DNA from: Octopus bimaculoides
Lineage: Eukaryota
NCBI RefSeq assembly: GCF_001194135.2
Contig: NC_068989.1
Span: forward strand, 7,411,516 to 7,475,515
Length of the DNA stretch: 64,000 bases
Reading direction: 5' to 3'
The position numbers and the translations under genes were made by a program. The notes below the pieces were generated by a model, which ran no database searches, was not told where the DNA came from, and worked only from the letters and a program-made list of their open reading frames with translations. Of the stretch, positions 10,241-48,896 are shown piece after piece; position 1 is the stretch's first letter; each line of letters opens with the position of its first letter.

Positions 10241-10734
10241 TCAGTCCAGCATGCAGGGGTGGCTGTGTGGTAACAAGTTTGCTTCTCAACCACCGGCTTT
10301 TGGGTTNNNNNNNNNNNNNNNNNNNNNNNNNNNNNNNNNNNNNNNNNNNNNNNNNNNNNNNNNNNNNNNNNNNNNNNNNNNNNNNNNNNNNNNNNNNNNN
10401 NNNNNNNNNNNNNNNNNNNNNNNNNNNNNNNNNNNNNNNNNNNNNNNNNNNNNNNNNNNNNNNNNNNNNNNNNNNNNNNNNNNNNNNNNNNNNNNNNNNN
10501 NNNNNNNNNNNNNNNNNNNNNNNNNNNNNNNNNNNNNNNNNNNNNNNNNNNNNNNNNNNNNNNNNNNNNNNNNNNNNNNNNNNNNNNNNNNNNNNNNNNN
10601 NNNNNNNNNNNNNNNNNNNNNNNNNNNNNNNNNNNNNNNNNNNNNNNNNNNNNNNNNNNNNNNNNNNNNNNNNNNNNNNNNNNNNNNNNNNNNNNNNNNN
10701 NNNNNNNNNNNNNNGTTTCTGTGTGTGTGTGTGT

Positions 10735-14565: not shown

Positions 14566-15568
14566 TTTGTAATCAGGAACGGAGTAAACAAATTTTTAAC
14601 AAAAGGCAATAATGATCTGTGTATTTTGCAAACAGCGTGACAGTCAGGAAACAGAGAATGCCGAGTTAGCTATATGTATATTTATATATATATACATATA
14701 TATATTTATATATACATATGCTTTGTATGTGATGAACGTTAACGTTACTTCAATGGATGGAATTTAAAAAAAAAAAAGAAGTCTTTCCACACTTAGCTTT
14801 TTACAATACAGCCAAGCTGTTCGAGAGGGTAACACAAAAGTCCAGAAATAAAGGTAATTCCAATAGAGTAAGGAAAAAAATAGTAATAAACCGGTTAATT
14901 AAAGATAAAGACAGCCGCTTCGGAAGCCGACGGCAGTCATTTTTAAATAACAATAGATTACTTCCCTTGAATCAGTGGAACTCTTGTGGAAAAAAACTAT
15001 GGAATGTTAAAAGGGTTTCCACTATTTCTTCTGAGTCCTGGTTCTTGGAATTGTTCATTGATTAAATGTTAATGGATGATTTCATTATTTATAAAAGAAT
15101 TTAATGCTGACAAGAAATACCATTGTTGTGTTTATTATTTTCTCATTTGTTATGTGATGTATGTCAATATGTAGGTATATGCGTCACCAATTTTTTGCCT
15201 TTATTTTTTCACCTTAAATTCTGATATAATTACAATCTACACACTCTGAAAAGTATTTGTAAAATATTTCCTTAAAAAAACAAAATAACCTTTTTCTGAA
15301 AGTTATGAGGAAACAAAGTCAATGGAGAACACTTTTATAGAGATACTAAACAAAAAATTCGCAGATTCAGATGAGCATCCGTAGAATTGACGATGCTGTA
15401 GATATTTTCGAATTTGCTTAACTCATTTTTCTCCAAAAAATATGTTTTTATAAAATATTAAATACTATCTTTATATATAATTATAAAAATTAGCTCAGAT
15501 TCAATCTTATTTTAGATGCGAACATTTCTATCTGAATAAGTAATTATTCTAAATAAATAAATAAAAGT

Positions 15569-24293: not shown

Positions 24294-24337
<44 letters not shown>

Positions 24338-26641
24338 CAGTGTCTCCATCTTAGTTGCTCGCATTTATGTCTTTGATACCATTCTCAGAGTTCGCTCTGG
24401 CGCTTTATCATTAGGTTCTTCATCTATTTCTCAACTTCTCCCACCTACCCCTTTTAATGTGGGGTACCCATATTTCTCCTCCATAGCAAGAAGTGTATGC
24501 TTGTCCCTCTATCATAGGGCCATCTCCCCATCTCAAACACTCTTTTTCCTTAGTCCCCAGTTCTTTTTCTGTCTTGGAAGCTGCTTGGTGGCATCACTAG
24601 TGCCAAGAGCATGAAAAAAAGCATCCAGGTATGCATAATAAAGTGTTCAATTAATAACTTGTAATGTCTCTCTTCCTCCCTCCACCCTCTCTCTCTTTCT
24701 CTCTCTCTCCCTCTCTCAATCTGTTTGTGTTTCTTTTTGCACATGCATGTGCATATGTTTGTCTCCAATGCCAAAATGTCCTGTTGCCCAAAACATTTTG
24801 AATGTCCAGTCAGTCATGCCAAGTTGTCAGCGCCCAAACAGCAGTGCCCAATAGTCTCATTCTGCTTTCTAGTACATTTTTTGCATGGATTTTTAAAAAA
24901 ATCTTTTAAATTTTCAATTTTTTGTCACTATACAGGGTATAGCTTTAGTGAGTAGGGAATCAAAACCAGAGGTTATATGGTACTTCTCTGCAGAAGACTT
25001 ACCTGAAGATTTGGCAGAACGGTAAGTTCATATTTTCAATTAGTTTTTATAATTTAATTGGACAATAGACATTAAATGATAATGATGATGATAAATAAAA
25101 TAAAATTAATTTTTGCTTCTTTATGCAGGTTTTCAATATTATTTCAAGCTCGTGGAAAATGGACCCTGGATGAAATTACACCTTATCTTACGTAAGTCAA
25201 CTGTGTGCCATCCTCTGCCCCTTGATTGAAAAATATTATTTCTTATTTTATCAAATGGAAAAAAACTATGATGTCTTTGACCGGTTACTTTTCAAATCTT
25301 AATGCTCTTCATTTTATTGCTGAGGGACAATATGGCCTTATTTATTTTCATAGTGGAGCAGTTATGGACAAACTACAGACCTTCTGAGTTGCATGTGTAA
25401 CGAAAAATTATTTTGAATTACTGGCACTTGTGCCGGTGGCACGTGAAAAAACATTTGAGCAAGGTCGTTACCAGTGCTGCTGGACTGGCTCCTGTGCAGG
25501 TGGCACGTAAAATACACCATTTTGAGCGTGGCTGTTGCCAGTACCTCCTGACTGGCCTTCGCGCCGGTGGCATGTAAAAGCACCCACTACACTCTTGGAG
25601 TGGTTGGCATTAGGAAGGGCATCCAGCTGTAGAAACTCTGCCAAACCAGATTGGAGCCTGGTGTAGCCATCTGGTTCACTAGTCCTCAGTCAAATCGTCC
25701 AACCCATGCAAGCATGGAAGGCGGACGTTAAACGATGATGANNNNNNNNNNACGTAAAAGCACCCACTACACTCTTGGAGTGGTTGGCATTAGGAAGGGC
25801 ATCCAGCTGTAGAAACTCTGCCAAACCAGATTGGAACCTGGTGCAGCCATCTGGTTCACTAGTCCTCAGTCAAATCGTCCAACCCATGCAAGCATGGAAG
25901 GCGGACGTTAAACGATGATGATGATGATGATTAGTGGCACCAGTGCCACTTAGAAGCACCCAGCTCACTGTGTAAAGTGGTTGACCTTAGGAAGGGCATC
26001 CAGCTGTAGAAACCAAACTAAATCAGACTGGAAACTAGTGCAGCTTGCCGGCTCTGGTTAAACCATCCAACCCATGCCAGCATGGAAAACAGACGATAAA
26101 TGATGATGATGATCCATGTTTCATGCAGCCTGCTTCTTGAAAAAAAAAAAATGGTTGCCTCTACATGTAGTAGGGCAATCTGATCTTTGCTCTTCAAACC
26201 CCTAATGGTTATAGACTCATCAGTTACCAGTTATCTGGCTGTCACCTTGTGTGTAGGACAAACATATACACACACATATACATATTTATATATATATATA
26301 TATATATACGACGGGCTTCTTTCAGTTTCCATCTACCAAATCCACTCACAAGGCTTCGGTCGGCCCGAGGCTATAGTAGAAGACACTTGCCCAAGGTGCC
26401 ACGCAGTGGAACTGAACCTGATACCATGTGGTTGGGAAGCAAGCCTCTCACCACACAGCCACTCCTGCACCCATTTTTCTTTGTTTTTACTTATTTTTCT
26501 GCTACGTTGTTTGTTTTTTTCTTCTGTTTTAGGGACCTGGAGACTGGGAAACTAGATGTAAGCAGTATGTTACTGAAATATGCACGTGCTTCAACGCAAA
26601 ATGCACAGAAGATTTATACATCACGAAAACCAGTTTTATGA
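15578..26641 (+). CDS. DSCC1: Sister chromatid cohesion protein DCC1 (Ctf18-RFC subunit), 399 aa, 12 coding exons
   Basis: Exons are 15578-15615, 16605-16769, 17783-17945, 19457-19591, 20741-20831, 22146-22287, 23058-23113, 23744-23817, 23907-23984, 24936-25021, 25129-25191 and 26533-26641. They total 1200 nt, and every junction is GT-AG and phase-consistent. Motifs match DCC1: VIRGDKADGAVLCTKEKTYELKEAETSNSLL, YTTEDLLDIVQASEKE, GYWRMLDFD, FNLAEFLEVWKQCVPEGM, LPEDLAERFSILFQARGKWTLDEITPYL, LLKYARAS. Confidence 0.95.
15811..16019 (+). mobile_element. SINE family B (tRNA-like head, GGCACCTTGGGCAAG core, followed by (TA)n)
   Basis: Consensus is ggcgtggctgtgtggtaagaagcttgcttcccaaccacatggttccgggttcagtcccactgcgtggcaccttgggcaagtgtc...gaaagaagcccgtcg. 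It is one of many copies in the window. Confidence 0.8.
18728..18968 (+). mobile_element. Composite repeat with a tRNA-like head and Penelope-like pseudo-LTR segment (family E)
   Basis: The head is tatggcatagtggctaagaaggcaggctactaaccccaagattcctagttcgattcc, followed by (AAT)n and then ctgaaggctggagggtatattagccgaaacgttgtg. Related pieces lie at 18050-18150, 31900-32030, 55600-55680 and 59820-59900. The Penelope assignment is tentative. Confidence 0.55.
21172..21610 (-). mobile_element. Two tandem SINE family D copies (DSCC1 intron 5)
   Basis: They are reverse complements of the family D consensus. Confidence 0.75.
25420..26113 (+). mobile_element. Cluster of family C elements in DSCC1 intron 11
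   Basis: There are three tandem copies ending in gttaaacgatgatgatg. The first two flank a 10-N gap and are near-identical. Confidence 0.75.
26307..26470 (-). mobile_element. SINE family B (DSCC1 last intron)
   Basis: It is the reverse complement of the family B head and core. Confidence 0.8.
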
Positions 26642-29967: not shown

Positions 29968-32900
29968 TTAGAAATTGTTCATTTCACAGTATTGCATTTT
30001 ACCATTTCGATGCCAGTCAAATTTCCAAACAGCATTGTTTTCATGTTCTGTGACATACAAAGTTTTGGAACGTGGCTCGAAATGAATGTTGCTTGGTTTT
30101 ACAAAAGGACATTTGATTCTTTGGATAGGATTTCCACCTTTTGAGTTGAATACTTCTATGTGACCACTGCCCCAGTTGGCTACAAGCAGGTTGTTGTCGT
30201 CATCAAAGTCCATGCCGTCTGCACCACCCTCGTGATCACCTATTTATAGAGGAAGGAAAGAAGTAAGGAAAGATGATTCAGATTTACAAGATTGACCTGA
30301 CAGTAAATCAAAATTCCATAAATACTTAATATCCAAATTTATTTATTCATTTGGGAAAATGGTGTCGCTCAAGAAGGACTCCTGTTTGAACAATTTTCAT
30401 GATGTTTCATATTTAGATGCTTTTATTATTGTGGAGGCACAATGGCCCAGTGGTTAGGGCAGCGGACTCGCAGTTTCGATTCCCAGACCAGGCGTTGTGA
30501 GTGTTTATTGAGCGAAAACACCTGAGGCTCCGGCAGGGGATGGTGGCGAACCCTGCTGTACTCTTCTACCACGACTTTCTCTCACTCTTACTTCCTGTTT
30601 CTGTTGTGCCTGTAATTCAAAGAAGCCAGTCGTATACTCTCTCTCTTTTACTCGTTTCAGTCATTTGACTGCGGCCATGCTGNNNNNNNNNNACCATGTG
30701 GTTGGTAAGCAAGCTACGTACCACACAGCCACTCCTGCACCTTGTTTACCTTTGTAAAGAGTTACGTCAATCCTTTTTAAAATAACAACAATAATAGTAA
30801 TAATAAACAACCATACAAGAATAAAGAATGGAAACTTTACCTGGTATAGTAGCCCAGACTTTCTTATTTGAAACACATCCTGGAGCTTCAATGTCATAAC
30901 TCCAGAGAAGTTTCGTCGGAGTTTCTGCTACAATCAACTTCTGAGGTCGTCCATCGTTCAGATGTAAGACTGCAATTCCATTGGGAAACTTTAGACCTGT
31001 GTCAATTTTAATCATTTCTCCATCTGTGTAGCAGTAGACACTGCCAAATGGTTCCTGCAAAATAGGTGGAAACATTGAGCATATAACAAATGTACTGGAG
31101 TATTGACATATTACTTAAAATACCAGAATGCGTCTGGTATTCTTGCTGGTTGCTGCTGTGACGTTTTTCGTCTCCCTTCGATATTGTTTTCAACAAAGCT
31201 CGTCAATAGGAGATGTTATCTCAGGACAAACACCACAGTAACTGGCCTATCAATGGTATATATACATTAAGTATGGCACAGAGACGATTATTTTAATTTA
31301 ATACTGCATATACCAGATTTCTATTCAGCACATTGACTATTTAAGGTGTTCCTGTTGTGACTATCCCATCTGATTTTCAAACACGGTGTATCTAGAACTA
31401 CATAAGTTTACATAGCATTCATTTTTAATTTTAACCCTTCACTTACCAACCTGGCTGAAACCAGCTCTGGCTCTGAGTACAAATGTCTTGTTTCCATAAG
31501 TTTTAAATTAAAATCTTCCACCAAACATTAGTCACAATTCATGTTCCTAACACTAGCTTAATGGTAACGAAGTTATTTTACTAAATTCTTTGTTATATTT
31601 AAAATTAATTGAAAGAAACACAGAGCATCTCAAAATAAATACAGTAACGAAAGGGTTAAGCTAGTTGAAGAAGATTTGAATGCTATTTCTAGCAGGTCGA
31701 GTGGTACATATAACGGAAAGATTACTTACCTCCGTTGATCGCCTGTATGGTGCTGGTGCAATATCTCCTGCTGGAGCTGTAATCCAAAGATTTCCTTGAT
31801 AATCAAAGGCACAGTCATTGCAGCCTTGCATACATTGACCGGTCGAATCAATTGTTGCAACCTAAATATGGAATGGTAAAACATAAAATAAGCACTATTC
31901 TATATTTTTGAGATGAAGAATTATGTACGTTCTTTACATATATGTGTCCTCACCTTGTTTGTTGTTACAACAATGTTTCGGCTGATGTATTCTCCAGCCT
32001 TCATCAGGTGTCCTGGTGGAATTTCGAACCTGACCCTTTATTTGACTAAAGGGGTACTCTGTTCTCATTCCTAAATTTTTATTTTTTTTTTGCTGATGTT
32101 ATTAAAAGAGGCAGCACATATACTTGGGCACAATGACCTCCTAAACAGACTTAGTGCAATTATGAATGTAATATGGAAACTAGTATTAAGAAAAGATAAA
32201 ATATTATGTTTATAAGCCCCAAAATTCACTCTATAATTGCCTATGGGCATATAGCGTAGTGAATAAGAGCGTGGGCTGCTAACCCTTGGATTCCGAGTTC
32301 AATCTCAGGCAGGGACTTCGGAAATAACATCATCATCATCGTTTAACGTCCGCTTTCCATGCTAGCATGGGTTGGAAGATTTGACTGAGGACTGGTGAAA
32401 CCGGATGGAAACACCAGGCTCCAATCTAATTTGGCAGAGTTTCTACAGCTGGATGCCCTTCCTAACGCCAACCACTCAGAGAGTGTAGTGGGTGCTTTTA
32501 CGTGTCACCCGCNNNNNNNNNNNNNNNNNNNNNNNNNNNNNNNNNNNNNNNNNNNNNNNNNNNNNNNNNNNNNNNNNNNNNNNNNNNNNNNNNNNNNNNN
32601 NNNNNNNNNNNNNNNNNNNNNNNNNNNNNNNNNNNNNNNNNNNNNNNNNNNNNNNNNNNNNNNNNNNNNNNNNNNNNNNNNNNNNNNNNNNNNNNNNNNN
32701 NNNNNNNNNNNNNNNNNNNNNNNNNNNNNNNNNNNNNNNNNNNNNNNNNNNNNNNNNNNNNNNNNNNNNNNNNNNNNNNNNNNNNNNNNNNNNNNNNNNN
32801 NNNNNNNNNNNNNNNNNNNNNNNNNNNNNNNNNNNNNNNNNNNNNNNNNNNNNNNNNNNNNNNNNNNNNNNNNNNNNNNNNNNNNNNNNNNNNNNNNNNN

Positions 32901-35900
32901 NNNNNNNNNNNNNNNNNNNNNNNNNNNNNNNNNNNNNNNNNNNNNNNNNNNNNNNNNNNNNNNNNNNNNNNNTCTTGCACACCACAACTGATGCTTCTTA
33001 TGTTCAGCTTTTCTCTCAAGATACTTACACTCTGACGGGTATGCACACTGACATTACACATCCAGCGGAGCATACTGGCTTCATTCCTTGCGAGCTTACG
33101 CATGTCCTGTGTATGCTTGTTTTTGTGTTTGCGCTTGTCCTCCCCTACCCTTTTGATAACCTGTGTTGGTTTGTTTATGTCCCTGTAGCTTAGTGGTTCA
33201 GCACTATAGAATACCTTAGGAATGAGAATGTATAAAATAAGCAGTTTACAAAAGTGACCCTTTCTTCGGACAGCATTCTCCCAGGGATGCAAATTATGTT
33301 TAATCAATAAACCAGCATCCTTCATTTGCCAATAATAGTCATTAAAACAACAATATAAAGAATAATATCAAATTGTTTGAGAAAGTTCAGGGAGCTTTTA
33401 CTTCTGTTGGTAACCAAAGGTCTCTCTCTCTGTCTTCTAGTAAAAGGAAGATTGTATGATGCATGTGTACAAACTGCGATGCAACATGAGAGTGAGATGT
33501 CGTTAAACGATGATGATGATGATGATGATGATGAATGGGAAGGTGTTTAGGATTTAAACTGGTGGAAGGTTTTAACTCAGATCATTTTAAAACATGGCGT
33601 CTGTGTGATAGAAGCAGGTGTGAATTCCAGCTAGTTGGTATGTATAAGATTAAGATAGCATTGGGCTCAAAATCCAATTCTAATCTGATACCAGCTATGT
33701 GATGACATACAAGCACTACTTATAGCAGACAGCACTCAAAACCTTTATTTGGTCGCCTGACCTATTAGAAATAAAGCTTATACCACACCGAAGGTATGGT
33801 CGTGTAAAGAAGCTTGCTTTGCAACTGTGTGGTTTCTGGTTCAGTTCCACTGTACACCACCTTGGGAAGTAGAACGTATAATAATTCTAGTGAAATACAT
33901 TCACTGATTTCAAATTTAGAAATAATACATTTCCTGTCGGCTTTGTAAACATAAGGACACAGGAAATGTCTCCCCCTTGTAAACATAAGGACACTGGAAA
34001 TGTGTGAAGGCCAACAGGAAGCAGTGCAGCTTCTTAGGTCCAAAACAACAGTAGTATTATTCCCTTCATGGGACTGTCAACATTAAGTTGACAACATACA
34101 GCTACTTCATTGTATCACTACTGCATAAATCTCTCTGAGAGATTTAGAAATGTATTATTTCTATTTTTTAAATCATTAAATGTATTTCACTAGAATTATT
34201 ATATATTTACAAGAGCTTGACAGGCCATTGCTACTCCAGATTGATGATGAGCAAATACTCAGAAACATGTCTCCGGATGCAGGGTTAGCTAAGTGGAGGT
34301 GCTTGTCTCCCCCTTGTAAGTATAAGGACACAGGAAATATGTCAAGGCCGACAGGAAGCAGTGCAGCTTCCTAGGTCCAAAACAACAGTAGTATTATTCC
34401 CTTCATGGGACTGACAACATTAAGTTGACAGCATACAACTACTTCATTGTATCACTACTGCATAAATCTCTCTGGGAGATTTAGAAATGTATTATTTCTA
34501 AAAATGGAGTAAATTCGTTTGACTAAAATTCTTCACGGCAGTGCCCCAGCATGGCCGCAGTCTCATGTCTGAAGCCAAAGCAATAAAGGAATCGGATGGC
34601 CAGGAGGTTGATGAATGACATAATATTACTTTGACAGTATTTCAAACTGGCATTCCATCATTTATGATCAAAAGGATCCCAGTTGGTCTGACCAACTGAA
34701 ATTAACATGCAAGTGGCCGAGTACTCCACAGACACGTATACCCTTAACTGTAGTTCTTAGGGTGTGGCCCTTTGAAATACTCATTTTGATCAGCTGAGTG
34801 GATGGGAGCAATGTGAAATAAAGTGTCTTGCTCAAGGATACAATGTGATATCGGGAATCGAACTCGCGACCTTATGATCATGAAGTGAATACTCTAACCA
34901 CTAAGACATGCACATTCACACCTCCCCCTGGATGGAATGCCAGTCCATCACAGGTTTACTTACTCACGACTAGGTGGACTGGAGTAATGTGAAATGCAGT
35001 GTTTTGCTCATGAATACAACACACTGCCCAATTCAGAAACTGAAACCGCGACCTTATAATTCTAAATGCAACATCTTAACCACTAGGCTACATGCCTTCT
35101 TAGGAGTTGTTCACTTGACTATTGTGTCAATACTAGCTGCTTTGAAGGCAACGAGCTGGCAGAAATGTGAGCACGCCAGGCGAAATGCTTAGCGGTATTT
35201 CGTCTGTCTTTACGTTCTGAGTTCAAATTCTGCCGAGGTCGACTTTACCTTTCATCCTTTCGGGGTCGATAAATTAAGTACCAGTTATGCACTGGGGTCG
35301 ATGTAATCGACTTAATCCCTTTGTCTGTCCTTGTTTAGCCCCTTGTGGGCACTAAAGAAATAGGAAACATTCTCGGGTCAATCTAATCGACTGGGCCCCC
35401 TCCTCCAAAATTTTGGGCCTTGTGTCTAGAGTAGAAAAGAATATTGTTACTTCTACCGAAGGCGGCGAGCTTACAAAAACATTAGAATGCCAGGCAAAAT
35501 GCTTAGCGGTATTTCGTCTGTCTTTATGTTCCGAGTTCAAATTCCGCCAAGGTCGACTTTGCCTTTCATCCTTTTGGGGGATCGATAAATTAAGTACCTG
35601 TTGTGTACTGGGGTCGATCTAATCGAGTGCTCCCCCCTCCCCCATAAATTTTCGGCCTTGTGTCAAGAGTAGAAAAGAATATTAACTGCTTTGAGATATT
35701 TTGAAGTAGCAACAAGCTCACCTCCTGCTAAATCTTTTACCTAATCACCGCCTCAGTTCTGACTGCCACCTAACAAGCTCCGCCCACAATATCCTGATAA
35801 AAAACCACTAATCAGCTCTTCCAATTACAAAAGTCAAAGAATAGTTGTCTGATATTTGTTTTTCCTGGTCTGTTATAATAACAACCTAACGTGTCTCCTT

Positions 35901-38900
35901 TTTTGAACTTAATGTAATCTCACACAAATAACACCTCAGCACATTCTTTTATGAACATTTAACACACCTGACCCAATTCATAAATAATATAAAGCTTTCT
36001 GCTAAGAATCGCTCAAATACTTTTAAAAACATATGACAACAAAACCAAGCATATATTTTCAAAATAAGCAATTGTCACAACCGTGGCTGTTACAGATGAT
36101 TTATATAATTGGAAACAGCAGGATTGTCACCACCTGCTGTATGCGTTTCTAGCTAACATTATCAGTCACACTGCAAAACAAGAGTCTTCATGAACTTAAC
36201 TCTAGATAAACAATGTATTTTACTCATAAAGTCCTGTGGCAGTCTTGTAACACAGGTTTGTTGTTATCCATTCATTGTTGCAAATTGCTGACAGACAGAT
36301 GGAAGATTAACCATTTAGCATTCAGATTATTCAAGCAAATGTAACATTTATTCATATTGTTTCCAATGAATCATGCATTACGTTGTAACTTCAAGATTTC
36401 AAAGGTATGATTGCTAATTTTCAAAATGACATTTTAGAGTTGGTGTGAGAGTCCAGATCTGACTAGGTTTAACATAAGACAGGTAGAATAATATTTGGGC
36501 TGGATTTGGCCTGCTTAAATGCTAAAGGATTAACATTCCTTTTATCTTTCTAGCAGAAGTTTTCCATTTAAATAATTGAAAAATCAATAATAAATCTCTC
36601 CACATTTCGGTGGCAAATATACTTCACGATGTGCTACTAGTGTTTTACATCTCGCTCAGAGATTTATTATCGCTTGTTTCCACTTTTTCGAGATCAGCGA
36701 TGATTTGTCACTGGAAAAAGCATATAGTATTTTGCGTTTGGAATCAGTTCTCATCCCTAGTTGATGGCAGGTTACTTATTACTTTATTGCCCGCAAGGGG
36801 CTAAACATAGAGGGGACAAACAAGGACAGACAAAGACATTAAGTTGATTACACCGACCCCAGTGCGTAACTGGTACTTAATTTATCAACCCCGAAAAGGA
36901 TGAAAGGCAAAGTTGACCTCCTGCGGAATTTGAACTCAGAATGTAATGGCAGACGAAATAGCACTAAGCATTTCGCCCGGCGTGCTAACGATTCTGCCAG
37001 CTCGCTGCAGGTTACTACCCAGAAACCCAGGCCTGTGTATCACGTAAAGCTGGAGATGGGAACAATGATTTCCCTTCGCAAATACTAATCGGACACAGAC
37101 AGTGTGTCGTTAGCCAGCTGGAGGAGATGTCTTCCTGGGGCTATAAACAACAGTAGCATCGTCCCCTATGGGACCACCACATTTAGATGCCAAATATGCT
37201 TCATCATTGAAAAATGTTATTTTAAAAGCACTGAGATGATGTGACCTCTCCACATAACTACTGACATCTCTCTCTCTTGGTCTGTCGATGCCTTTGAATG
37301 ACACATCGGGCTGTCAGTGATCACCAGTTACCTCTGTCACTGTCATACTGGTATACTGCAAGTAATTTTTTAACAGCCTGTGATGGTTTGGCTTGTTTTC
37401 AATATTTTATTATTAACAATTACTGTACTCAGCAGACATACTTCCATCCAAGTTCCTAAGTCTACAACACTTCATCTCCCATTCATAATATGGCTGCATT
37501 ATATGCAGAACAATTTTTGCATACAATTAATAATAAAAGAAGTGCGTTTTAAGCACAGACAAATATGGCAATTATTATTCTTTCTAATTTTGGTATGTGA
37601 CCAGTGCTGGATTAACCAATACGCAAAAGAAGCACATGCTCAGGCCATCAGGGGAAGGAGAGAGGCAACACAGAAATGGTAAATGGTTTACAACACAAAA
37701 GAAATCACTTGCTAGAATAATATTCAAGATGCTTTATCTCTAATATGGATAAAAGCAGATGTGTTATGGAAGATTAATTTTGAGGATCTGATCAAAGACT
37801 TTGCAATTAAAAAAAGTAGGAGAAAACTTTTCAAATATAAGCAATGTGGAAGTATACACAAATAAATATTATTTTCCATGTTACTGTTAGTTTTGTTCCA
37901 TTTTGAAAAATAGAAATTTATTTTATGGTTTATTAATTGTTGTAGCCTATGCCAGTGGTGTATAACCTTGCCCACTTATGAGTACTCTTCATTCATTGTG
38001 CCATCGTGAATAGTAAGACAAGCAAGACAAAAAAATGTGATTGATAGCGTGAATGATCTTTACTACTTGGGAGCCTGGAAAAAAGATCAAAGCTTGTTAA
38101 AATGAAGGAAAATCATTGAATTTACCTGTTTATATGTTCCATTGAGTTTCACCTGAAGCAAACCAAGTCTCATGTCGGCCACAAAGAGGTTATCAAGGCG
38201 ATCAAACTGACACCCAGCAGGGATTCCACCATAACCGTTGATTTCAGGTTCACACAGAATGGCATTCTGTCAAAATAAATGGTATATGATTAGAAACGGA
38301 ATCAGGACACATTATTTATTTGCTTCTCGATGCTCCAGGAAGTCTATCTCTTATGTATACCAATTGTTACCTGAAGGTATCAATTGGTATACATAAGTAG
38401 GTATATCAATACCTACTTGTTTCAGTCATTGGACTGTGGCCATGCTGGGGCATCACACTGAAGTGTTTTAGTTGAACAAGTCAACCCCAGTACTCATAGT
38501 TTTTATAAATCTGGTACTTATTTTATTAGTCTTTTTTTTGCCAAACGGCTAAGTTACAGAGGTGTAAACAAACCAACACTGGCTGTCAAGTGGTAGGGGA
38601 GCAGTGAGAAACGGTGACAGACAGGCAAGCAGACACACATATATGTATACACACATATATATATGTACATATATGTAGGTAAATATATATGTGTGTGTGT
38701 ATATGTATGTGTGTGTGTGTATACACTTTTTACCTACACTATTCACTTGTAAGGCATTGGTTGGACCAGGGCTACAGTGAAAGACACTTACCCAAAGTGC
38801 TGGGCAATGGGGCTGAATCTGAAACCACATGGTTGCAAAGCGAGTTTCTGAACCACACAGCCGTACCTATAACTACATGATCACATTTTTAAAAATTCAA

Positions 38901-41900
38901 TCACATTCACACTTCCATGTATGTCACTTAACATTTTGTATCGAGTAGACAATCCTTAATGCAGTCCTTTTCATATTTTGAAAACCCTTAATAATTCATT
39001 AAGCTAGTGTTACTAACATAATACTTTACACAAAAGACTAACATACACTGCTTTCTCTACCTAGTTTCACATGAGTACCATGGGAAAGTACAGTTCGTTC
39101 TCATAAATAGTAAAAACCTTTGTATCATTAGCAAGTATCGTCGATACTCTCAGGTCAATAAAATAAAGTACTGGAATTCATCATCATCATCATCATCGTT
39201 TAACGTCCGCTTTCCATGCTAGCATGGGTTGGACGATTTGACTGAGGATGGTAACAATTAATACCCTGACTTTGTACCTAAATTAGGAACAATTATTATT
39301 GGAAAATTATGTACAAATGTACTCTAATTGGGATCAATGTCCTTGATAATGAGATGCAATTACTTTCCTTAGATAATGGGGAATTTCAAACAATCCTAGT
39401 AGTTCCTAGTAGAGTAGATATCCGTATTAATTCTTTAGCATTTAAGCTAGTCATATCCAGCCCAAATATTTTATCTGTTTTATGCTCAAACCAGCTAGAT
39501 CTGATCTCTCACACCTACTCTGATAATGTTATTGAACTCTCAACCCGAGTCTCATATCGGCTAAAAAGAGGTTATCAAGGCGACCAAACTGACATCCGGC
39601 AGGGATTCCACCATAACTATTGATCTCGGGTTCACGTAGAATGTATAATTAATTCAAAACAATGGCAGTAAATAAGCTCTACATTTGACAGAAAAATCTG
39701 TATGTTAAAGGGTTAATGCAGCTCTTATAATTATGCTGATCCTTGTAAGGAAAACTATCAAGCTTGTTGGTAACAGTAGCTAAGATACCTATAACTACTA
39801 GGAGTGCTTTTACAAAAACCCTCCACAGTCTTCGCAGTTACCTCGCTAAGTCCTGGTATTTCCTTATTTTTTCCCCCCTGTCCTTTAACTGCCACATTCA
39901 TATCAGCAAGCATAGCCACATCTATGATGATGCACTCTTTAGATACTTTGTCGTCGTCGTCATTTAACATCTGCTTTCCATGCTAGCATGGGTTGGACGA
40001 TTTGACTGAGGACTGGTGGACCAGGAGGCGACACCAGGCTCCAATTTGATTTGGCAGAGTTTCTACAGCTGGATGCCCTTCCTAACACCAACCACTCCGA
40101 GAGTGTAGTGGGTGCTTTTACGTGCCACCGGCACAAGGGCCAGTCAGGTGGTACTGGCGACGGCCTCGCTCAAAATGGTGCATTTTACGTGTCACCTGCA
40201 CAAGAGCCAGTCCAGCAGCACTGGCAACGATCTCGCTCGAATGTCATATTGGCAACAGCCATGCTTGAAATGGTGTATTTTACGTGTCACCTGCACAAGA
40301 GCCAGTCCATCGGCACTGGCAACAATCTCACTCGAATATCTTTTCACGTGCCAGGGAGGCGACGTTTGTCCAAGATGATAATGTCCAGTCATCTTTCCTG
40401 AATCTCAAACTCAGTTTGTACAGTGAAGTCCCACAAGAATTCAGACTGATTATTCTATCAAACTCTCTGTTTGATGTTAGTACCATTCTCTGCTTACTTC
40501 AAAAATCTCCTGACACGTTATTAGTAATTTTCCCCCACCAAGCTGAGCTTAGTTATATACGCTTTTGTTTTCCCCATTTAGTTCTTAGTCTAACCGTTAC
40601 AGTTTAAACAATACTGGTACAATACCTTGAACAATAGATACTAGCTGTCGGATGTCATAAAAAAGTATATCTACCAACAGCTTTGATGTCGTTCAGAAAC
40701 CCTGGCAACTGACAATATACTCATCAAAGTCACCTGTTCAGATAACATCTGGTACAGGTTTTCAGAATTCAATAATTGCACAATGAGCAGCAGATGCATG
40801 TAAGTAAATATTAATAGATGTAGCTAAAAATACATCCATCAAAGCAATGTGATAAAGAAATACAACTCCAGTAACACACCGGATATTGCTAACCTCATCA
40901 AAACTTCTCAAACGCAATAGATGAAAACAAGGAGTGACTGATTCAGTATTGACTCAGACATTGATTTATCAATTTATGGTAGCACTGACTTCGACTCCCT
41001 CTTGGACTCTGACTCCTGTGTTTCAAATTAATCCAATATTTCTGACATCGATTGAAAGCTCAAAACAAGGATGGTTAAGGGAAGTCATCAGGATGCTTTG
41101 TGTCATCCAAACCTGTTGAAGTTTGACTTTAAAGAACATAACTGTGTCTCTGAGGCATTTTTCTTACTTGTGAAGTGTCTTTGTTGCTCCCAAGGCCTAA
41201 GGAAGAGCCCTCCATGAGCGCTAGCTTATAAGCCACCCTATCGGGCGGATTTTAAGCTCGTTAATAATAATTGGATATTTTAAAAACAAACTTGGTTAGA
41301 TATAAACCTTCTTTTCAGAATTCTAACATTGTTTTTTTTTATATAAAATTTAAGCGAATGAAATATGAAAGATTATACGAAATGAGATACAAAATTATAT
41401 TATAAAAGATTGAAGAGTTGATCCCTACAAAATTTAATAAAGAAACATTGTATCTATAGAACAAGGGTTAAATAAAAATAAAAAAATTTACTAACAGGTG
41501 TGAATATGGTTGTGTTGTTAAGAAGCTTGTTTTGCGACCATGTAGCTTTGAGTTCAATCCCACAGTACGGCACTTTGGGCAAGTGTCTATTACTACATCC
41601 TGGGCTGACCAATACCTTGTGAGTGAATCTGGTAGATGGAAACTGGGGGGAAACCTGTCATAAACATGTATGTGTGAGTGTGTGAGACATTGTGTTTGTC
41701 TCTTCCCCACCATTTGACAGTTGGTATTGGTCCCTGTAACTCAGCAGTTCAGTGAGAGAGCCTGATAAAATGAATACCAGACTTCAAAAAAAAAAAAACA
41801 AGTGCTGGAGTTGGTTTGTTCTGCCAAACCCTTCAAGGCAGTGCCCCAGCATGGCCTCAGTCCAACGACTAAAACAAATAAGAAGAGAAAAAGAAAGAAA

Positions 41901-44900
41901 GATAGATAACATCTTGTTCATAAGAAAGAGAACTGCTCCTCTCAGCTCCACCATCTCAGAAGTCCTTAAGTAGGAGTCGATAATTTTCAGTGCAGGAAGT
42001 CTACTCTGTAAAGTGGTTNNNNNNNNNNNNNNNNNNNNNNNNNNNNNNNNNNNNNNNNNNNNNNNNNNNNNNNNNNNNNNNNNNNNNNNNNNNNNNNNNN
42101 NNNNNNNNNNNNNNNNNNNNNNNNNNNNNNNNNNNNNNNNNNNNNNNNNNNNNNNNNNNNNNNNNNNNNNNNNNNNNNNNNNNNNNNNNNNNNNNNNNNN
42201 NNNNNNNNNNNNNNNNNNNNNNNNNNNNNNNNNNNNNNNNNNNNNNNNNNNNNNNNNNNNNNNNNNNNNNNNNNNNNNNNNNNNNNNNNNNNNNNNNNNN
42301 NNNNNNNNNNNNNNNNNNNNNNNNNNNNNNNNNNNNNNNNGCCCGCCAAAGCAGACCTTGCCGATGCTGGTGCTACATAAAAAGCACCCAGTCCAGTTTA
42401 AAGTGGTTGGCATTAGGAAGGGCATCCAGCCATAAAATGCCCGCCAAAGCAGACCTTGCCGATGCTGGTGCTACATAAAAAGCACCCAGTCCAGTTTAAA
42501 GTGGTTGGCATTAGGAAGGGCATCCAGCCATAAAATGCATGTCAAAACAGTGGAGCATGGTGCAGTCCTCTGGCTTACCAGCTTCTAACAAATTGTCCAA
42601 CCCATGACAGCATGGAAAATGAACATTAAATGGTGATGGTAATTATGATGACGATATGATGACGATGATAGCATTTGTTGGTGATTGTGCATTTTTACCA
42701 ACTTCGACTCAACGGCACTGACCAATGCATAATCAAAATGGAACTCAGAATTAAACAATTGAAAAGAACATAGACAGGTGCAGGCAAGATTGTGTGGTTA
42801 AAAAGCTCACTTCGCAACCACAAGGTTTTGGGTTCAGTCCCAATGTGTGACACCTTAGGCAAGTGTCTTTTAATATAGCCTTGGGCTGACCAATGCCTTA
42901 TGGGTGATTTTGATAGCTGGAAACTATGTGGAAGCCCACCGAGTATGTGTATGGTTGTGTGTGTGCGCGTGCACATGTATGTATGTTTGTTCCCTCTACC
43001 ACTGCTTTGTAACTGGTGTTGGTTTGTTTATGTCCCTGTAACACTGGTCTGGCAAAAGAAATTGACAGAGTAAATACCAGACTTTAAAAATAGTATCGGC
43101 TTGAACTTAAAATGCTCCAAGGTGGTGGTCCAGCTTGGCTGCAGTCCAATGAGTGAAGCAAATAAAAGAAAAGATTTAAAAAACTTAAAACTTCTTAGCA
43201 AATTTTTAGAAATATAAAATGGTTAAGTTGGACACAGAACACTCAGATATCAACCGACACCATAGGAGACCACTGAACACAAAACACAACCATACATATA
43301 CACACATCTTTGAATAACTGGCTGAAACATGTGAAAACCTGTTTTTACTTTTGCTGGATAAAACAGCAAATATTTTATATACTAAGTAATTAAATAGTCA
43401 AATCAATGCTAATAAACAAGGCATGAAAAAAAAAAAAAGAGATGACAAATATTTCTGTAGCTATATTTAATCAATATTTCAATGCTTATCATTATTATTA
43501 TCATTCTGTAGTCTTATTATTATCACGTGCTTTCACTGCACTACCAAGCGCAGCTCTGTGTTCCTTGGGTATGTGCTGTGGTTTGTTGTGATGCTCTTAT
43601 GGTTACTGCATTGAAAGTGTTTTATGTAGGATGTGTGCGGTGCCTAGTAGTGCTATTTTCTGTATGTTATATATATTTGTAAGTCCTGGTGTTTTTGTTA
43701 CATATTTGTCTGAATATTTTTTTTATCATACCTAATACGCCCACTATGATAGGAATTGTTTCTGTTTTTAAACTCCACATTCAGGTTACCTCTATTTCCG
43801 GGTCTTTGGATTTTGAAAGTCTCTCCATTTCTTTTAGAGAAATTATTATTATTAAGGCGGTGAGCTGGCAGAATCATTAGCATGCTGGACAAAATGCTTA
43901 GCAGTATTTCACCTGTCCTGGTCTTCTTAGCCCACTTGTATGTTTCTTCTAACTCATGTTGCAGGTGCACAGCATCTCCAGGGTTTTCTATCACCTGTGG
44001 GACTTTTGTATCATCTGCATAACTTGTGATCGTGGCTAAGGGCATATCTGAGAGGACCATTATAGACAGTAGTGGTCCCAAAACAGTGCCTTGCAGAACC
44101 CCACTCACTGTTTGCATGTCATTGGCTACTACTGAAGAAAATGAATTAGCTTAAGTTTGTACTCAATATTTTATTTATTGTGTGTGTGTGTGTGTGTTTG
44201 TGTGCTCATGCATGCAGTTTGTGTGCTCGTGCATGCATAAATTGAGATTTCTTAAAGCTATAACCACAAAGAGTTATTTGTTATGTTACGCTTACCCCCT
44301 ACTGGTTGATCTTTTCCATTTCTTTGTTACGTTAAAATGTTTTGTATTTTCTCTTTATCGTCTCCTCTTCTCTCTCTCCCTTCATCCCTTTCGCATGGAA
44401 AAGATCAAAATTTAGGATCTCAGATTCACAAACAATATGGACATTGTTCATGATGTGAAAGTGACGCCAACATTAATTTCAGATAATGGAGCTATCTACG
44501 TATGGACCAAAAGTAGCCAGAGACATACAGCCTAAAGGAAGCACCCAAAATCTCTCCAGTCTTAATTTCCACAAAGCAAACTGGAAATTGATCCAAAAAG
44601 AGATCCTTAGACAGAAATACAAAGAGATACAAATGAGAAAAAAATACCAAAAATGCATGAATATTGCATATATTTCTATAGCAATATTCTTTTCTACTCT
44701 AGGTACAAGGCCTGAAATTTTTGGGGAGGGGGCCAGTCGATTAGATTGACACCAGTACACAACTAGTACTTTAATTTATCAACCCTGAAAGGATTTCTAT
44801 AGCAGTATTATCATGCTAGAATGGACATATTGTGATATATAGAACTAAGAAAGTCAGAACAGATAAACTGAATAAGATTACTCCATAGCATTATATTTCT

Positions 44901-47900
44901 GATTTGAAATATGAAATCAAAGTTCTAAATGAACAGATATAAATAAAGGAAATAACATTAATACATGGGTGTGTTTGGAAGCTTATAACTGGAGAGGCAT
45001 GGAAGGATATACATTCAGGAGATAAAAAATGTGAGATAAGGCATGATCAACTGGAAGTAATGTGAATAGATAGGCATTAGGTTTGACAGATTAACATTAG
45101 AGTTAATCTGAATACTTGAATTAACCCTTTCATGACCAACCTGGCTGAAACCAGCTCTGGCTCTGAGTACAAATGTCTGGTTTTCATAAGTTTTGAATTA
45201 AAATCTTCCACCAAACCTTAGTTATAAATTATGTAACTAACACTAGCTGAATGGTAACTAAGTCATTTTACTAAATTCTTTGTTATATCTAAAATTAATT
45301 GAAAGAAACACAAAACATCTCAACATAAATATGGTCACAAAAGGGTTAAAATATATAACAGAGAAACAATTCTTAACCCTTTTGATACCATCCCAGCTGA
45401 AACCACCTCTGGTTCTGAGTACAAATGTCTTGTTTCCATTATGTCAGACATAAGAAGCATCAGATGTGGTGTGCAAGAGAGATGACTGTGCTGGTATGGT
45501 CATGTGCTGCGTATGGATGAGGAGAGCTGTGTGAAGAAATGTCACACTGTGGAAGAGGTAGACCCAAGAAGACACAGATTGAGGTGGTGAAGCACGACCT
45601 TCGAACGTTGAGCCTCACAGAAGCAATGACAAGCAGCTGAGACCTTTGGAGATATGCTGTGCTTGAGAAGACCCGGTAAGCCAGGTGAGACCCTAGTCGT
45701 GGTTGATGCCGGTGTCACATAACTGGCCCATTTAAAAGCACCCTTGGGCAATATGCTGTGCTTGTGAAGACCTGTTGAATGGAGTGAAATTGTAGTCGTG
45801 GCCGACGCCAGTGCCACCTGATTGGCACCCATGCTGGGTGTAGGTATATATATAGCTGTGTTTGTTGGTTTGTTTTCTTTCCGTAAATGATAAAGTTGTG
45901 GGTGAAGATGTTTATGTTAGCGTATGGTGTGTAATGTGTGTGTGCAGGGTGGGGGGTCTGTGTATATGTGGGGATACAATTTGTGTGAAGGGGTATGTGT
46001 TGNNNNNNNNNNNNNNNNNNNNNNNNNNNNNNNNNNNNNNNNNNNNNNNNNNNNNNNNNNNNNNNNNNNNNNNNNNNNNNNNNNNNNNNNNNNNNNNNNN
46101 NNNNNNNNNNNNNNNNNNNNNNNNNNNNNNNNNNNNNNNNNNNNNNNNNNNNNNNNNNNNNNNNNNNNNNNNNNNNNNNNNNNNNNNNNNNNNNNNNNNN
46201 NNNNNNNNNNNNNNNNNNNNNNNNNNNNNNNNNNNNNNNNNNNNNNNNNNNNNNNNNNNNNNNNNNNNNNNNNNNNNNNNNNNNNNNNNNNNNNNNNNNN
46301 NNNNNNNNNNNNNNNNNNNNNNNNNNNNNNNNNNNNNNNNNNNNNNNNNNNNNNNNNNNNNNNNNNNNNNNNNNNNNNNNNNNNNNNNNNNNNNNNNNNN
46401 NNNNNNNNNNNNNNNNNNNNNNNNNNNNNNNNNNNNNNNNNNNNNNNNNNNNNNNNNNNNNNNNNNNNNNNNNNNNNNNNNNNNNNNNNNNNNNNNNNNN
46501 NNNNNNNNNNNNNNNNNNNNNNNNNNNNNNNNNNNNNNNNNNNNNNNNNNNNNNNNNNNNNNNNNNNNNNNNNNNNNNNNNNNNNNNNNNNNNNNNNNNN
46601 NNNNNNNNNNNNNNNNNNNNNNNNNNNNNNNNNNNNNNNNNNNNNNNNNNNNNNNNNNNNNNNNNNNNNNNNNNNNNNNNNNNNNNNNNNNNNNNNNNNN
46701 NNNNNNNNNNNNNNNNNNNNNNNNNNNNNNNNNNNNNNNNNNNNNNNNNNNNNNNNNNNNNNNNNNNNNNNNNNNNNNNNNNNNNNNNNNNNNNNNNNNN
46801 NNNNNNNNNNNNNNNNNNNNNNNNNNNNNNNNNNNNNNNNNNNNNNNNNNNNNNNNNNNNNNNNNNNNNNNNNNNNNNNNNNNNNNNNNNNNNNNNNTGG
46901 TTAGCTTGCTTACCAACCACATGGTTCCGGGTTCAGTCCCACTGCGTGGCATCTTGAGCAAGTGTCTTCTACTATAGCCTCGGGCCGACCAAAGCCTTGT
47001 GAGTGGATTTGGTAGACGGAAACTGAAAGAAACCCGTCGTATATATGTATATATATATATGTGTGTATGTGTGTGTATATGTTTGCGTGTCTGTGTTTGT
47101 CCCCCCAACATCGCTTGACAACCGATGCTGGTGTGTTTACGTCCCCCGTAACTTAGCAGTTCGGCAGAAGAGACTGATAGAATAAGTACTAGGCTTACAA
47201 AGAATAAGTCCTGAGGACCATTGGCTCGATTAAAGGCGATGCTCCAGCCTGGCCGCAGTCAAATGACTGAAACAAGTAAAAGAGCTGATAAAAGTGCTTT
47301 CATTTTCTCTATGAAAATGTCTTCAGTGTTTGCATTAACTCCCCCTGATTTGAAGGCTGGACCTCAATGTTACGGCTATACCGCAAAGGAATGTAACTAT
47401 TACCACAAGGCATTTAGAGCAGTACTCGACCCGGATATGTACGGTGTGAGGTATAATTCCATACACTTCCTTTGTGTGTGTGTGTGTGTGTGTGTGTAAG
47501 GAGGGGGAGAAATGGTGAATGTAATAAACTGTGAACAGCTGGTACTTTTTTCAAACTCATTGCAAACGGGTATTATTACTGCATAAATCGCATAACTAAA
47601 TCTTGATACAATTTTTTTTTTGCTCCCTTCATAGTTTTAGCTTTGCCCCGTGTATAAAATCGCACCCCAGTATTTTCAGATAAAATCGGTCACAGAATCG
47701 GTGCAACGTATACAAGAATAAATACGGCAATTGTTTAGAATTTAGTGCAACAAGAGCTGTGATTGTTGTACGATATCCACAAATTCCGGGAAATACGAGA
47801 CCGACAACCAGTTTTAAATAACCATGTCTCTTTTATTCAAATGAGTAATTCTTTTGACGAAGGCATAACTAACCTAATTTCTTTTATAACATACAAACGT

Positions 47901-48896
47901 ATGATATGATTCAGCGCCTATTCAAGGAAATGAATAATCATTGAATTATGAATGTTGGAATACGTACTAATATAATTTATACTATATCGATATTGCATAC
48001 CCTTCGACGTGGAAATACAATAAGCATTTTCTCCCTCGAATTTTTAATCCACCACTTTTTCGATCTCACGATGTACTTTTGTTTCTTTGTCCATATGTGT
48101 GTGTGGATAGATAGATAGATAGATGATTAGAGTTAGACAGATAGAATGATAGATAGATACTTATCAATATTAAGAATGGTCTCAGTTCTCAATCACAGAA
48201 ACTTGAAAAGCATATGAAAAAAATCGACGTGTAGTATAAATTAAGAAAGAGGGCCAAGTGATGGATTACCAGGGATCTTTTGCAACAACTAAACCGTTAA
48301 GAAGTATTTGTTTGATTAAAATTAAGACCACAACTCTAATTTAGATTATCAGCTGGACCTAATATATTTTTGCCCGGATGTAAAACGGGACCGCCTTACC
48401 GATTCTCTGTTCCCTATAAACCTATGTATGTAAATNNNNNNNNNNNNNNNNNNNNNNNNNNNNNNNNNNNNNNNNNNNNNNNNNNNNNNNNNNNNNNNNN
48501 NNNNNNNNNNNNNNNNNNNNNNNNNNNNNNNNNNNNNNNNNNNNNNNNNNNNNNNNNNNNNNNNNNNNNNNNNNNNNNNNNNNNNNNNNNNNNNNNNNNN
48601 NNNNNNNNNNNNNNNNNNNNNNNNNNNNNNNNNNNNNNNNNNNATATATATATATATATATATATATATAATAATTTCTAAAAGATGATCGATATCGAAC
48701 GATGAAAATTTTCTTCACTTACTTTATTTGTTTTCAAATTCACACACAATATCTGGCCGGCAGGTTTATCGTTTTTTTCCACTTCGGGAGCCACAACGTA
48801 AAAACAACCTGATTTATCAAAGACAGGGCCTTCTGAACCAAGAACATCTGATGCCACTTTGGTAAATAAAGGTTCATCGACTGGTATACTTTCCAT
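29968..48896 (-). CDS. Squid-type diisopropyl-fluorophosphatase (DFPase), a Ca-dependent six-bladed beta-propeller phosphotriesterase of the SMP-30/gluconolactonase family, 310 aa, 5 coding exons
   Basis: Exons in transcript order are 48896-48723, 38266-38126, 31861-31730, 31054-30841 and 30239-29968, with phases 0,0,0,1. The translation aligns nearly gap-free to Loligo DFPase as I recall it: EPLFTKV..D..G.EGPVFDK, YGGIPAGCQ, VADMRLGLL, MQGCNDCAFDY.GNLWITAPAG, FPNGIAV, LIVAETPTK.LWSYDI, HEGGADGMDFD.DNNLLVANWGS, CPF.KPSN.HF, VTEHENNAVWKF.W.RNGK.QYCE. Confidence 0.95.
30431..30620 (+). mobile_element. tRNA-derived SINE, family A, 3'-truncated (DFPase intron 4)
   Basis: It matches the 5' half of 8095-8491. 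Confidence 0.8.
31431..31659. mobile_element. TTAA-flanked about 229-bp MITE (piggyBac-like CCCT termini)
   Basis: The structure is TTAA-CCCTT...AAGGG-TTAA, with homologous copies at 45121-45349 and 51132-51360. Confidence 0.8.
33967..34500 (+). repeat. Diverged direct repeat of an approximately 200-bp unit
   Basis: Positions 33967-34163 and 34304-34500 are highly similar, and a partial third copy lies at about 54235-54320. Confidence 0.75.
35145..35682 (+). mobile_element. Tandem copies of SINE family D
   Basis: The head ggcgagctggcagaa...gagttcaaattccgcc carries a B-box-like motif, and the core is cctttcatcctttcggggtcgataaattaagtacc. Two heads lie in tandem. Confidence 0.75.
36307..36533. 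mobile_element. TTAA-flanked MITE, second family
   Basis: The termini are ttaaccatttagcatt and aatgctaaaggattaa. A larger gap-spanning relative lies at 26768-27812. Confidence 0.65.
39541..39642 (-). pseudogene. Decayed duplicate of DFPase exon 2 (pseudo-exon) within intron 1
   Basis: It matches exon 2 positions 38159-38260 at 88 of 102 nt in the same orientation. It translates as ILREPEINSYGGIPAGCQFGRLDNLFLADMRLGL and then RVQ-stop. It has no AG acceptor or GT donor at the homologous positions. Confidence 0.85.
39955..40350 (-). mobile_element. Family C element with minisatellite units
   Basis: It is a reverse-complement copy starting catttaacatctgctttccatgctagcatgggttgg. Other copies lie at about 3861-4050, 17183-17420, 18170-18500, 22640-22917, 29175-29288 and 32328-32512. 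Confidence 0.75.
43922..44117 (-). mobile_element. LINE (CR1/L2-like) reverse transcriptase remnant in DFPase intron 1
   Basis: The translation SGVLQGTVLGPLLSIMVLSDMPLATITSYADDTKV matches RT motifs (SGVPQGSVLGPLLF and YADD). It is truncated by a SINE. Confidence 0.85.
44460..44630 (+). mobile_element. Probable LINE ORF2 linker remnant
   Basis: The translation LSSLNFHKANWKLIQKEI resembles the NF.KANW motif after the CR1-type endonuclease domain. Confidence 0.45.
45121..45349. mobile_element. TTAA-flanked MITE, same family as 31431-31659
   Basis: It has the same termini and internal sequence. Confidence 0.8.
46898..47285 (+). mobile_element. SINE family B with its 3' tail module
   Basis: The core is followed by a (TA/TG)n tract and then the tail gtttgtccccccaacatcgcttgacaaccgatgctgg...aatgactgaaacaagtaaaaga. 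Confidence 0.8.

Follow-up and report, generated by a model that had tools for sequence, protein, structure and literature searches.

A complete five-exon orthologue of squid diisopropyl fluorophosphatase with a conserved active site in Octopus bimaculoides

Squid diisopropyl fluorophosphatase (DFPase) is a calcium-dependent enzyme that breaks down organophosphate nerve agents; it attracts applied interest for this detoxifying ability and as a scaffold for protein engineering. We analysed a stretch of 64,000 nucleotides (nt) of the Octopus bimaculoides genome (GCF_001194135.2, contig NC_068989.1, positions 7,411,516 to 7,475,515; hereafter the window, 38.8% G+C with 14 runs of N) and found on its minus strand, at 29968-48896, a gene that we regard with a probability of about 0.9 as the single-copy orthologue of squid DFPase in this species, encoding a protein of 310 amino acids (aa) with no evident signal peptide and a predicted six-bladed beta-propeller fold. 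The gene is already annotated under this name, and the result is a correct re-derivation, not a discovery. An exact-sequence look-up showed that the product is letter for letter RefSeq XP_014768571.1 and UniProt A0A0L8HXN5, 'diisopropyl-fluorophosphatase [Octopus bimaculoides]'. Positions 19968-58896 of the window are identical, as reverse complement, to GCA_001194135.2 CM046609.1:7431483-7470411, and the gene annotated in that record spans exactly the coordinates given above. Annotated members of the DFPase family are likewise already known throughout the molluscs, as well as from tunicates, a brachiopod, a bryozoan and a placozoan, and the octopus gene is unremarkable among them.

The squid DFPase sequence used as the tblastn probe is identical to PDB 1E1A at positions 2-309. 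It detected five collinear minus-strand segments that span the whole protein, together with one extra partial copy of the second segment (Table 1). All four introns have GT-AG borders and the spliced coding sequence of 933 nt translates into 310 aa without frameshift or stop, which bears out the complete spliced DFPase orthologue that an initial annotation, made from the raw sequence, had proposed. Three AATAAA signals lie 232-350 nt 3' of the DFPase stop (29735, 29698 and 29617). Tandem DFPase paralogues were sought in the window by tblastn and none was found beyond chance matches, nor did a large protein search return a second octopus DFPase paralogue.

Five assembly gaps lie within the gene. 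All five are intronic and none touches an exon, therefore the frame across a gap is no issue for the coding sequence, and no coding segment appears to be missing because the product aligns to the squid enzyme over residues 3-308 with only two one-residue indels. The corresponding O. sinensis locus (GCA_006345805.1 CM016868.1, here L002) is free of any N; its five exons match those of O. bimaculoides in order, length (174/141/132/214/272) and GT-AG borders. These five exons translate exactly to XP_029641994.1, and a search of this gapless locus for a further coding exon revealed none beyond them. Exons hidden in the gaps were thus ruled out by the unbroken squid alignment and by the gapless O. 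sinensis locus, where these five exons are the only ones. Four of the five gaps have 400-nt flanks that map collinearly on L002 (those of gap 48436-48643 to L002:9841-10227 and 10245-10656); the fifth, 46003-46897, sits among dispersed repeats and was not placeable there. One flank of gap 42019-42340, at 42341-42740, gives three staggered matches to a ~98-nt tandem repeat of O. sinensis (L002:25178-25751), and this repeat probably explains the assembly break at the gap.

Table 1. Coding exons, assembly gaps and a decayed exon duplicate at the DFPase locus (positions in the window; residues in octopus numbering)
Feature	Position	Strand	Description
Coding exon 1	48896-48723	-	174 nt, Met1-Lys58; ATG at 48896 in ACCATGG context; donor GTAAGT, phase 0; catalytic-Ca ligand E22, pocket residue E38
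Coding exon 2	38266-38126	-	141 nt, Asn59-Gln105; acceptor TTTTGACAG, donor GTAAAT, phase 0; I73, A75, M90
Coding exon 3	31861-31730	-	132 nt, Val106-Glu149; acceptor ATATTTAG, donor GTAAGT, phase 0; N120, D121, Y144, R145, R146, T148
Coding exon 4	31054-30841	-	214 nt, Glu150 to first base of Gly221; acceptor TTTTGCAG, donor GTAAAG, phase 1; F172, N174, T194
Coding exon 5	30239-29968	-	272 nt including TAA stop 29968-29970; Gly221-Phe310; acceptor ATAAATAG; D228, D231, W243, S270, N271, I272, H273, H286
Assembly gap	30683-30692		intron 4
Assembly gap	32513-32972		intron 2
Assembly gaps	42019-42340, 46003-46897, 48436-48643		intron 1
Decayed partial exon-2 duplicate	39535-39642	-	ILREPEINSYGGIPAGCQFGRLDNLFLADMRLGLRVQ followed by a stop; inside intron 1, ~1.3 kb upstream of the real exon 2; AG acceptor and donor lost

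The identity of the product was examined by sequence search, phylogeny and structure prediction. In a PDB search (HMMER alignment) the octopus protein matched squid DFPase 1E1A along its full length (E=1.4e-157, query residues 3-308 against target 2-309), with 215 of 306 positions identical (70%). The next matches outside DFPase were bacterial beta-propeller lactonases at E~1e-7 and a 'Smp-30/Cgr1 family protein' at E=7e-5, and Pfam assigned the protein to the SGL family (PF08450, E=1.8e-30). In the protein search, identity was 94% to O. sinensis, 82% to Argonauta, 69% to a cuttlefish cluster and 66% to a DFPase-derived synthetic construct. Proteins named 'diisopropyl-fluorophosphatase-like' from gastropods, bivalves, Lingula, Watersipora and Trichoplax followed at 53-64%, with annelid relatives (Owenia, Dimorphilus) that do not carry that name in the same range, and the tunicate Clavelina at 47%. 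A neighbour-joining (NJ) tree of 45 sequences (290 columns, Kimura distances, 100 bootstraps) follows the species tree and places the octopods as sister to squid and cuttlefish, with support of 98/100 for the cephalopods and 100/100 each for the octopods and for Loligo with cuttlefish. Because the octopus gene lies in this cephalopod clade as sister to the squid and cuttlefish genes, it is the orthologue. An AlphaFold2 model built on a 37-sequence alignment (mean predicted local distance difference test, pLDDT, 97.1; predicted template-modelling score, pTM, 0.94) predicts the beta-propeller, and Foldseek aligned this model to about 30 DFPase entries, including 1E1A, 1PJX and 2GVV, with template-modelling (TM) scores of 0.98-0.99 and root-mean-square deviations of 0.6-0.8 Å, the value being 0.7 Å for the three entries named. 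The next Foldseek matches were the Ca-dependent lactonases RPA3624 and Drp35, at TM ~0.76.

Squid DFPase holds its catalytic Ca2+ through E21, N120, N175 and D229 (PMC8510429, PMC7916636) and its structural Ca2+ through D232, H274 and the carbonyl of L273, uses D229-S271-H287 as a proton relay, and has side-group pockets defined by the enantioselectivity variants E37A/Y144A/R146A/T195M (PMC7916636). None of Glu37, Tyr144, Arg146, Thr195, Met148 and Trp244 is named in PMC5979579. In the HMMER alignment to 1E1A the four catalytic-Ca ligands correspond to octopus E22, N120, N174 and D228, squid D232 and H274 to D231 and H273, and the relay residues S271 and H287 are conserved as S270 and H286. 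The pocket residues E37, M90, Y144, R146, F173, T195 and W244 are found as E38, M90, Y144, R146, F172, T194 and W243, so that every Ca ligand, the histidine of the relay and every pocket residue named as kept in the initial annotation is present. Together with the identity to 1E1A, the position in the tree and the fold, this set of intact ligands and relay residues supports the orthology claimed there. Squid L273 is I272 in octopus, a change of little consequence, since only the backbone carbonyl of this residue binds the metal.

A further comparison was provided by P0004, a DFPase-derived engineered scaffold that differs from the wild type at exactly 12 positions (E21, E37, N120, D121, Y144, R146, M148, N175, T195, E225, D229 and N272). 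The octopus protein matches squid at 11 of these engineered active-site positions, the exception being 148, and the inclusion of M148 among the twelve independently supports residue 148 lining the pocket. Among the complete family sequences sampled, none departs from the four catalytic-Ca ligands, not even relatives at 25-34% identity; the truncated Mya protein alone is without the stretch around D229. Most relatives down to ~46% identity retain the structural ligands D232 and H274, with Q at 274 in two (a cuttlefish-like sequence and Dreissena), and nearly all of the metazoan family members sampled have S271 and H287.

Relative to squid DFPase, the octopus protein carries T instead of M at position 148 and R instead of T at position 145. 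The initial annotation had put forward M148T, with the adjoining T145R, as the clear difference in the pocket. Both changes are indeed present, but the weight given to M148T was overstated: no pocket site in the family varies more than position 148, which is occupied by M, T, F, S, N, D or I, so T148 is no notable departure, and T is also found there in Mytilus edulis and Lingula. Of the four octopods compared, only O. bimaculoides has T148; the other three (O. sinensis, O. vulgaris and Argonauta) retain M148, therefore T148 arose on the O. bimaculoides lineage. R145 is common to the three Octopus species and several molluscs, with T145 kept in Argonauta, and position 144 is F in O. sinensis and O. 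vulgaris and Y in O. bimaculoides and squid. We consider it an unlikely, speculative extension that the O. bimaculoides-specific M148T, beside R145 and in a pocket otherwise identical to that of squid, gives the enzyme a measurably different substrate range or stereo-preference from those of squid and O. sinensis, and, more broadly, that the family may be an invertebrate enzyme that is ancient and strongly conserved, has close relatives among prokaryotes (~50% identity) and acts on a native substrate yet to be discovered. If such a shift were real, M148T would be a natural variant reporting on the role of position 148; as a variant that can be compared with M148 of O. sinensis it is of modest value.

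The gene was also examined for signs of being native and functional. Haliotis cracherodii has all four intron positions of the octopus gene (after residues 58, 105, 149 and 221 in octopus; 61, 108, 152 and 225 in Haliotis), therefore the five-exon architecture predates the gastropod-cephalopod split. A Dcc1-domain gene is the convergent downstream neighbour of DFPase in both octopus genomes, O. bimaculoides and O. sinensis. With the same exon structure in O. sinensis and Haliotis and the same neighbour in two octopus species, the gene is a native eukaryotic one and not contamination, as the exon structure had suggested at the outset. The ratio of nonsynonymous to synonymous divergence (dN/dS) against O. 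sinensis is 0.19 (dS 0.158, dN 0.031), which indicates purifying selection and argues for a functional gene. Cuttlefish orthologues are full-length on many Logan contigs of 1.5-4.6 kb, as expected of cDNA. One candidate octopus cDNA, P0114, was rejected as a genomic exon-1 read-through from another octopus.

The extra segment detected by tblastn at 39535-39642 is a pseudo-exon and no part of the DFPase product. O. sinensis has the same decayed exon-2 copy (L002:31224-31313), with the same lost acceptor and an extra 9-nt deletion, therefore the duplication predates the split between O. bimaculoides and O. sinensis. Its use as a mutually exclusive alternative exon was considered and ruled out, as it has no AG acceptor or donor, runs into a stop and is decayed in the same way in O. 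sinensis. Another local exon duplication in the DFPase family was seen in Haliotis cracherodii, where a decayed copy of the start of the last exon (L006:12101-12250; 58% identity, internal stop) lies right after the DFPase-like stop.

Two other explanations of the gene itself were weighed against orthology. The gene model might be an assembly or annotation artefact, with exons stitched across gaps from different loci, or an intact-looking pseudogene. The five N-gaps of estimated length inside the 19-kb span, the local duplication shown by the decayed exon-2 copy in intron 1 and the failure to find an octopus transcript in the contig collection all point in that direction. However, the gaps are all intronic, the exons are collinear on one strand and in phase, with canonical splice sites and no frameshift or stop, and the gapless O. 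sinensis locus, to which four of the five gap flanks map collinearly, is identical in architecture. Combined with the four intron positions in Haliotis and the dN/dS of 0.19, these observations make an artefact or a pseudogene very improbable. We give still less credence to a generic regucalcin/SMP30 gluconolactonase mislabelled as DFPase, a reading for which the shared Pfam family SGL would speak, because the PDB match to DFPase (E=1e-157) is far removed from those to the lactonases (1e-7) and the Smp-30/Cgr1 family protein (7e-5), because the structural-Ca ligands D231 and H273 are present whereas SMP30 is without them (PMC7916636), and because in the NJ tree the protein sits inside the cephalopod DFPase clade. 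The grouping with generic regucalcin that the initial annotation had named as refuting its claim is not seen.

How the enzyme would work can be proposed by analogy with the squid enzyme. A catalytic Ca2+ at the base of the central tunnel, held by E22, N120, N174 and D228, would bind and polarise the phosphoryl (or carbonyl) oxygen of the substrate. D228 would act as the direct nucleophile or would activate water as a general base, both views being current (PMC8510429), and S270-H286 would serve as the proton relay. The side groups would be accommodated in pockets lined by E38, M90, Y144, R146, T148, F172, T194 and W243, fluoride would depart towards H286 (PMC7916636), and a second, structural Ca2+ would be held by D231, H273 and the carbonyl of I272. 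On this basis we infer that the expected activity is Ca-dependent hydrolysis of the P-F (and P-CN) bonds of diisopropyl fluorophosphate (DFP) and G-type agents. P-F hydrolysis cannot be the function under selection, since organofluorophosphates are man-made. Judging from the squid enzyme and its relatives, P-F/P-CN hydrolysis would most probably be a promiscuous side-activity and the native substrate a lactone or ester-like metabolite, since the nearest structural relatives are lactonases and DFPase is itself active on hydrophobic lactones, being placed among the beta-propeller enzymes with demonstrated activity on hydrophobic non-sugar lactones (PMC9843451, Table 4 footnote).

Some points weigh against reading the gene as a working octopus DFPase. 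Enzymatic data for any octopus DFPase were sought in the searchable literature and none were found, and a literature search for an octopus DFPase paper likewise returned none. When an octopus transcript with this exact protein was sought in the contig collection, a genome record only was retrieved, so the evidence for splicing consists of canonical sites, conservation between species and the match to the RefSeq model. T148 (M in squid and in the other octopods) and R145 adjoin the pocket and could alter rates or stereo-preference, and a lactonase-like native function is a guess from structural neighbours. On a rival account, the DFPase family may be a housekeeping Ca-dependent lactonase/esterase conserved across marine invertebrates, for which 'DFPase' is only a historical name, and T148/R145 may make the octopus enzyme poor at hydrolysing P-F bonds. 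Relatives at 52-64% identity in gastropods, bivalves, a brachiopod, annelids, a bryozoan and Trichoplax (47% in Clavelina) would fit such a role, as would prokaryote-like intronless relatives at 46-50% identity, and so would the lactonases as nearest solved structures outside DFPase, the activity of DFPase on hydrophobic lactones (PMC9843451) and the man-made origin of organofluorophosphates. We regard this account as a credible one that falls short of even odds. It does not conflict with the orthology on gene identity and differs from it in emphasis alone; loss of the promiscuous P-F activity is unlikely given that 11 of the 12 engineered pocket residues and all catalytic residues are as in squid, and T at 148 in Mytilus and Lingula also speaks against T148 making the octopus enzyme a poor P-F hydrolase.

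The remainder of the window contains further genes and gene-like features. At 12238-14595 on the minus strand, an uninterrupted open reading frame (ORF) of 786 aa encodes a full CPSF2/CPSF100-type protein with Lactamase_B_6, Beta-Casp, RMMBL and CPSF100_C domains; it is intronless, while the nearby 310-aa DFPase gene spans 19 kb, and may have arisen as a retrogene or be an essential gene that naturally lacks introns. The exons of a BTB-BACK-Kelch gene (BTB E=3e-21, BACK E=3e-15, Kelch motifs) lie at 2481-7020 on the plus strand. The Dcc1-domain gene, with a 399-aa product in the public annotation, occupies ~19968-26641 on the plus strand, possibly from near 16500; it is convergent with DFPase, the 3' ends being ~3.3 kb apart, and the arrangement in O. 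sinensis is alike. Within intron 1, at 43701-44150 on the minus strand, a 150-aa open frame with a reverse-transcriptase-like motif (...VLQGTVLGPLL...YADDTKV) is probably a retrotransposon fragment, as judged from motif reading. Pfam at E<=1e-3 gave no match for this ORF, for a DHFR-like ORF (56609-56914) or for a zinc-finger-like ORF (58460-58735), and these three labels are therefore not claimed.

The result has little significance beyond showing that the initial annotation, working from raw sequence, correctly rebuilt the active site and the spliced form of a eukaryotic gene. The conservation of the five-exon architecture and of the catalytic set across molluscs adds modest value. As the active site is nearly identical to that of squid, the octopus orthologue makes the natural-substrate question no more tractable than the squid enzyme does.

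The closest known system is Loligo vulgaris DFPase (PDB 1E1A, 1PJX, 2GVV and 3O4P), whose UniProt accession we take to be Q7SIG4. The two proteins are alike in the Ca ligands, the S271-H287 relay, the pocket residues E37/M90/Y144/R146/F173/T195/W244 and the propeller fold; they differ in length (310 aa in octopus, 314 in squid, with two one-residue indels) and in M148T, T145R and L273I, and the octopus protein is known from sequence. Among octopods, the DFPase-like proteins of O. sinensis (XP_029641994.1), O. vulgaris (CAI9728053.1) and Argonauta hians are all 310 aa long, with identities of 94%, 94% and 82%. For O. sinensis, the only species so compared, exon structure and Dcc1 neighbour are alike and intron 1 contains the decayed exon-2 copy; this intron is much longer there, and the gene spans 33 kb compared with 19 kb in O. 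bimaculoides. In the DFPase-like proteins of Haliotis, Mytilus, Dreissena, Biomphalaria, Lingula, Owenia, Trichoplax and Clavelina (47-64% identity), the ligands of both the catalytic and the structural Ca are retained whereas the pocket positions 37, 144, 145, 148 and 244 vary, and some lineages, such as Owenia, have several divergent, longer DFPase-like paralogues. The closest non-animal relatives are intronless proteins of 270-282 aa on compact, prokaryote-like metagenome contigs (L003:6001-6843, L004 and L005; P0050-P0066), at 46-50% identity, which is unusually high for a comparison of animal with prokaryotic proteins; all Ca ligands are present in them, most have H287 (two have L), and they are without the 144-146 loop. 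More distant are the lactonases RPA3624 (Rhodopseudomonas, PDB 7RIS/8DJF) and Drp35 (Staphylococcus, PDB 2DG1) and SMP30/regucalcin, which have the same fold and an E/N/N/D-type metal site at the base of the tunnel (TM ~0.76; PMC9843451) but are only ~20-22% identical and belong to a different subfamily from octopus DFPase. SMP30, in particular, is without the structural second metal and prefers other divalent ions (PMC7916636).

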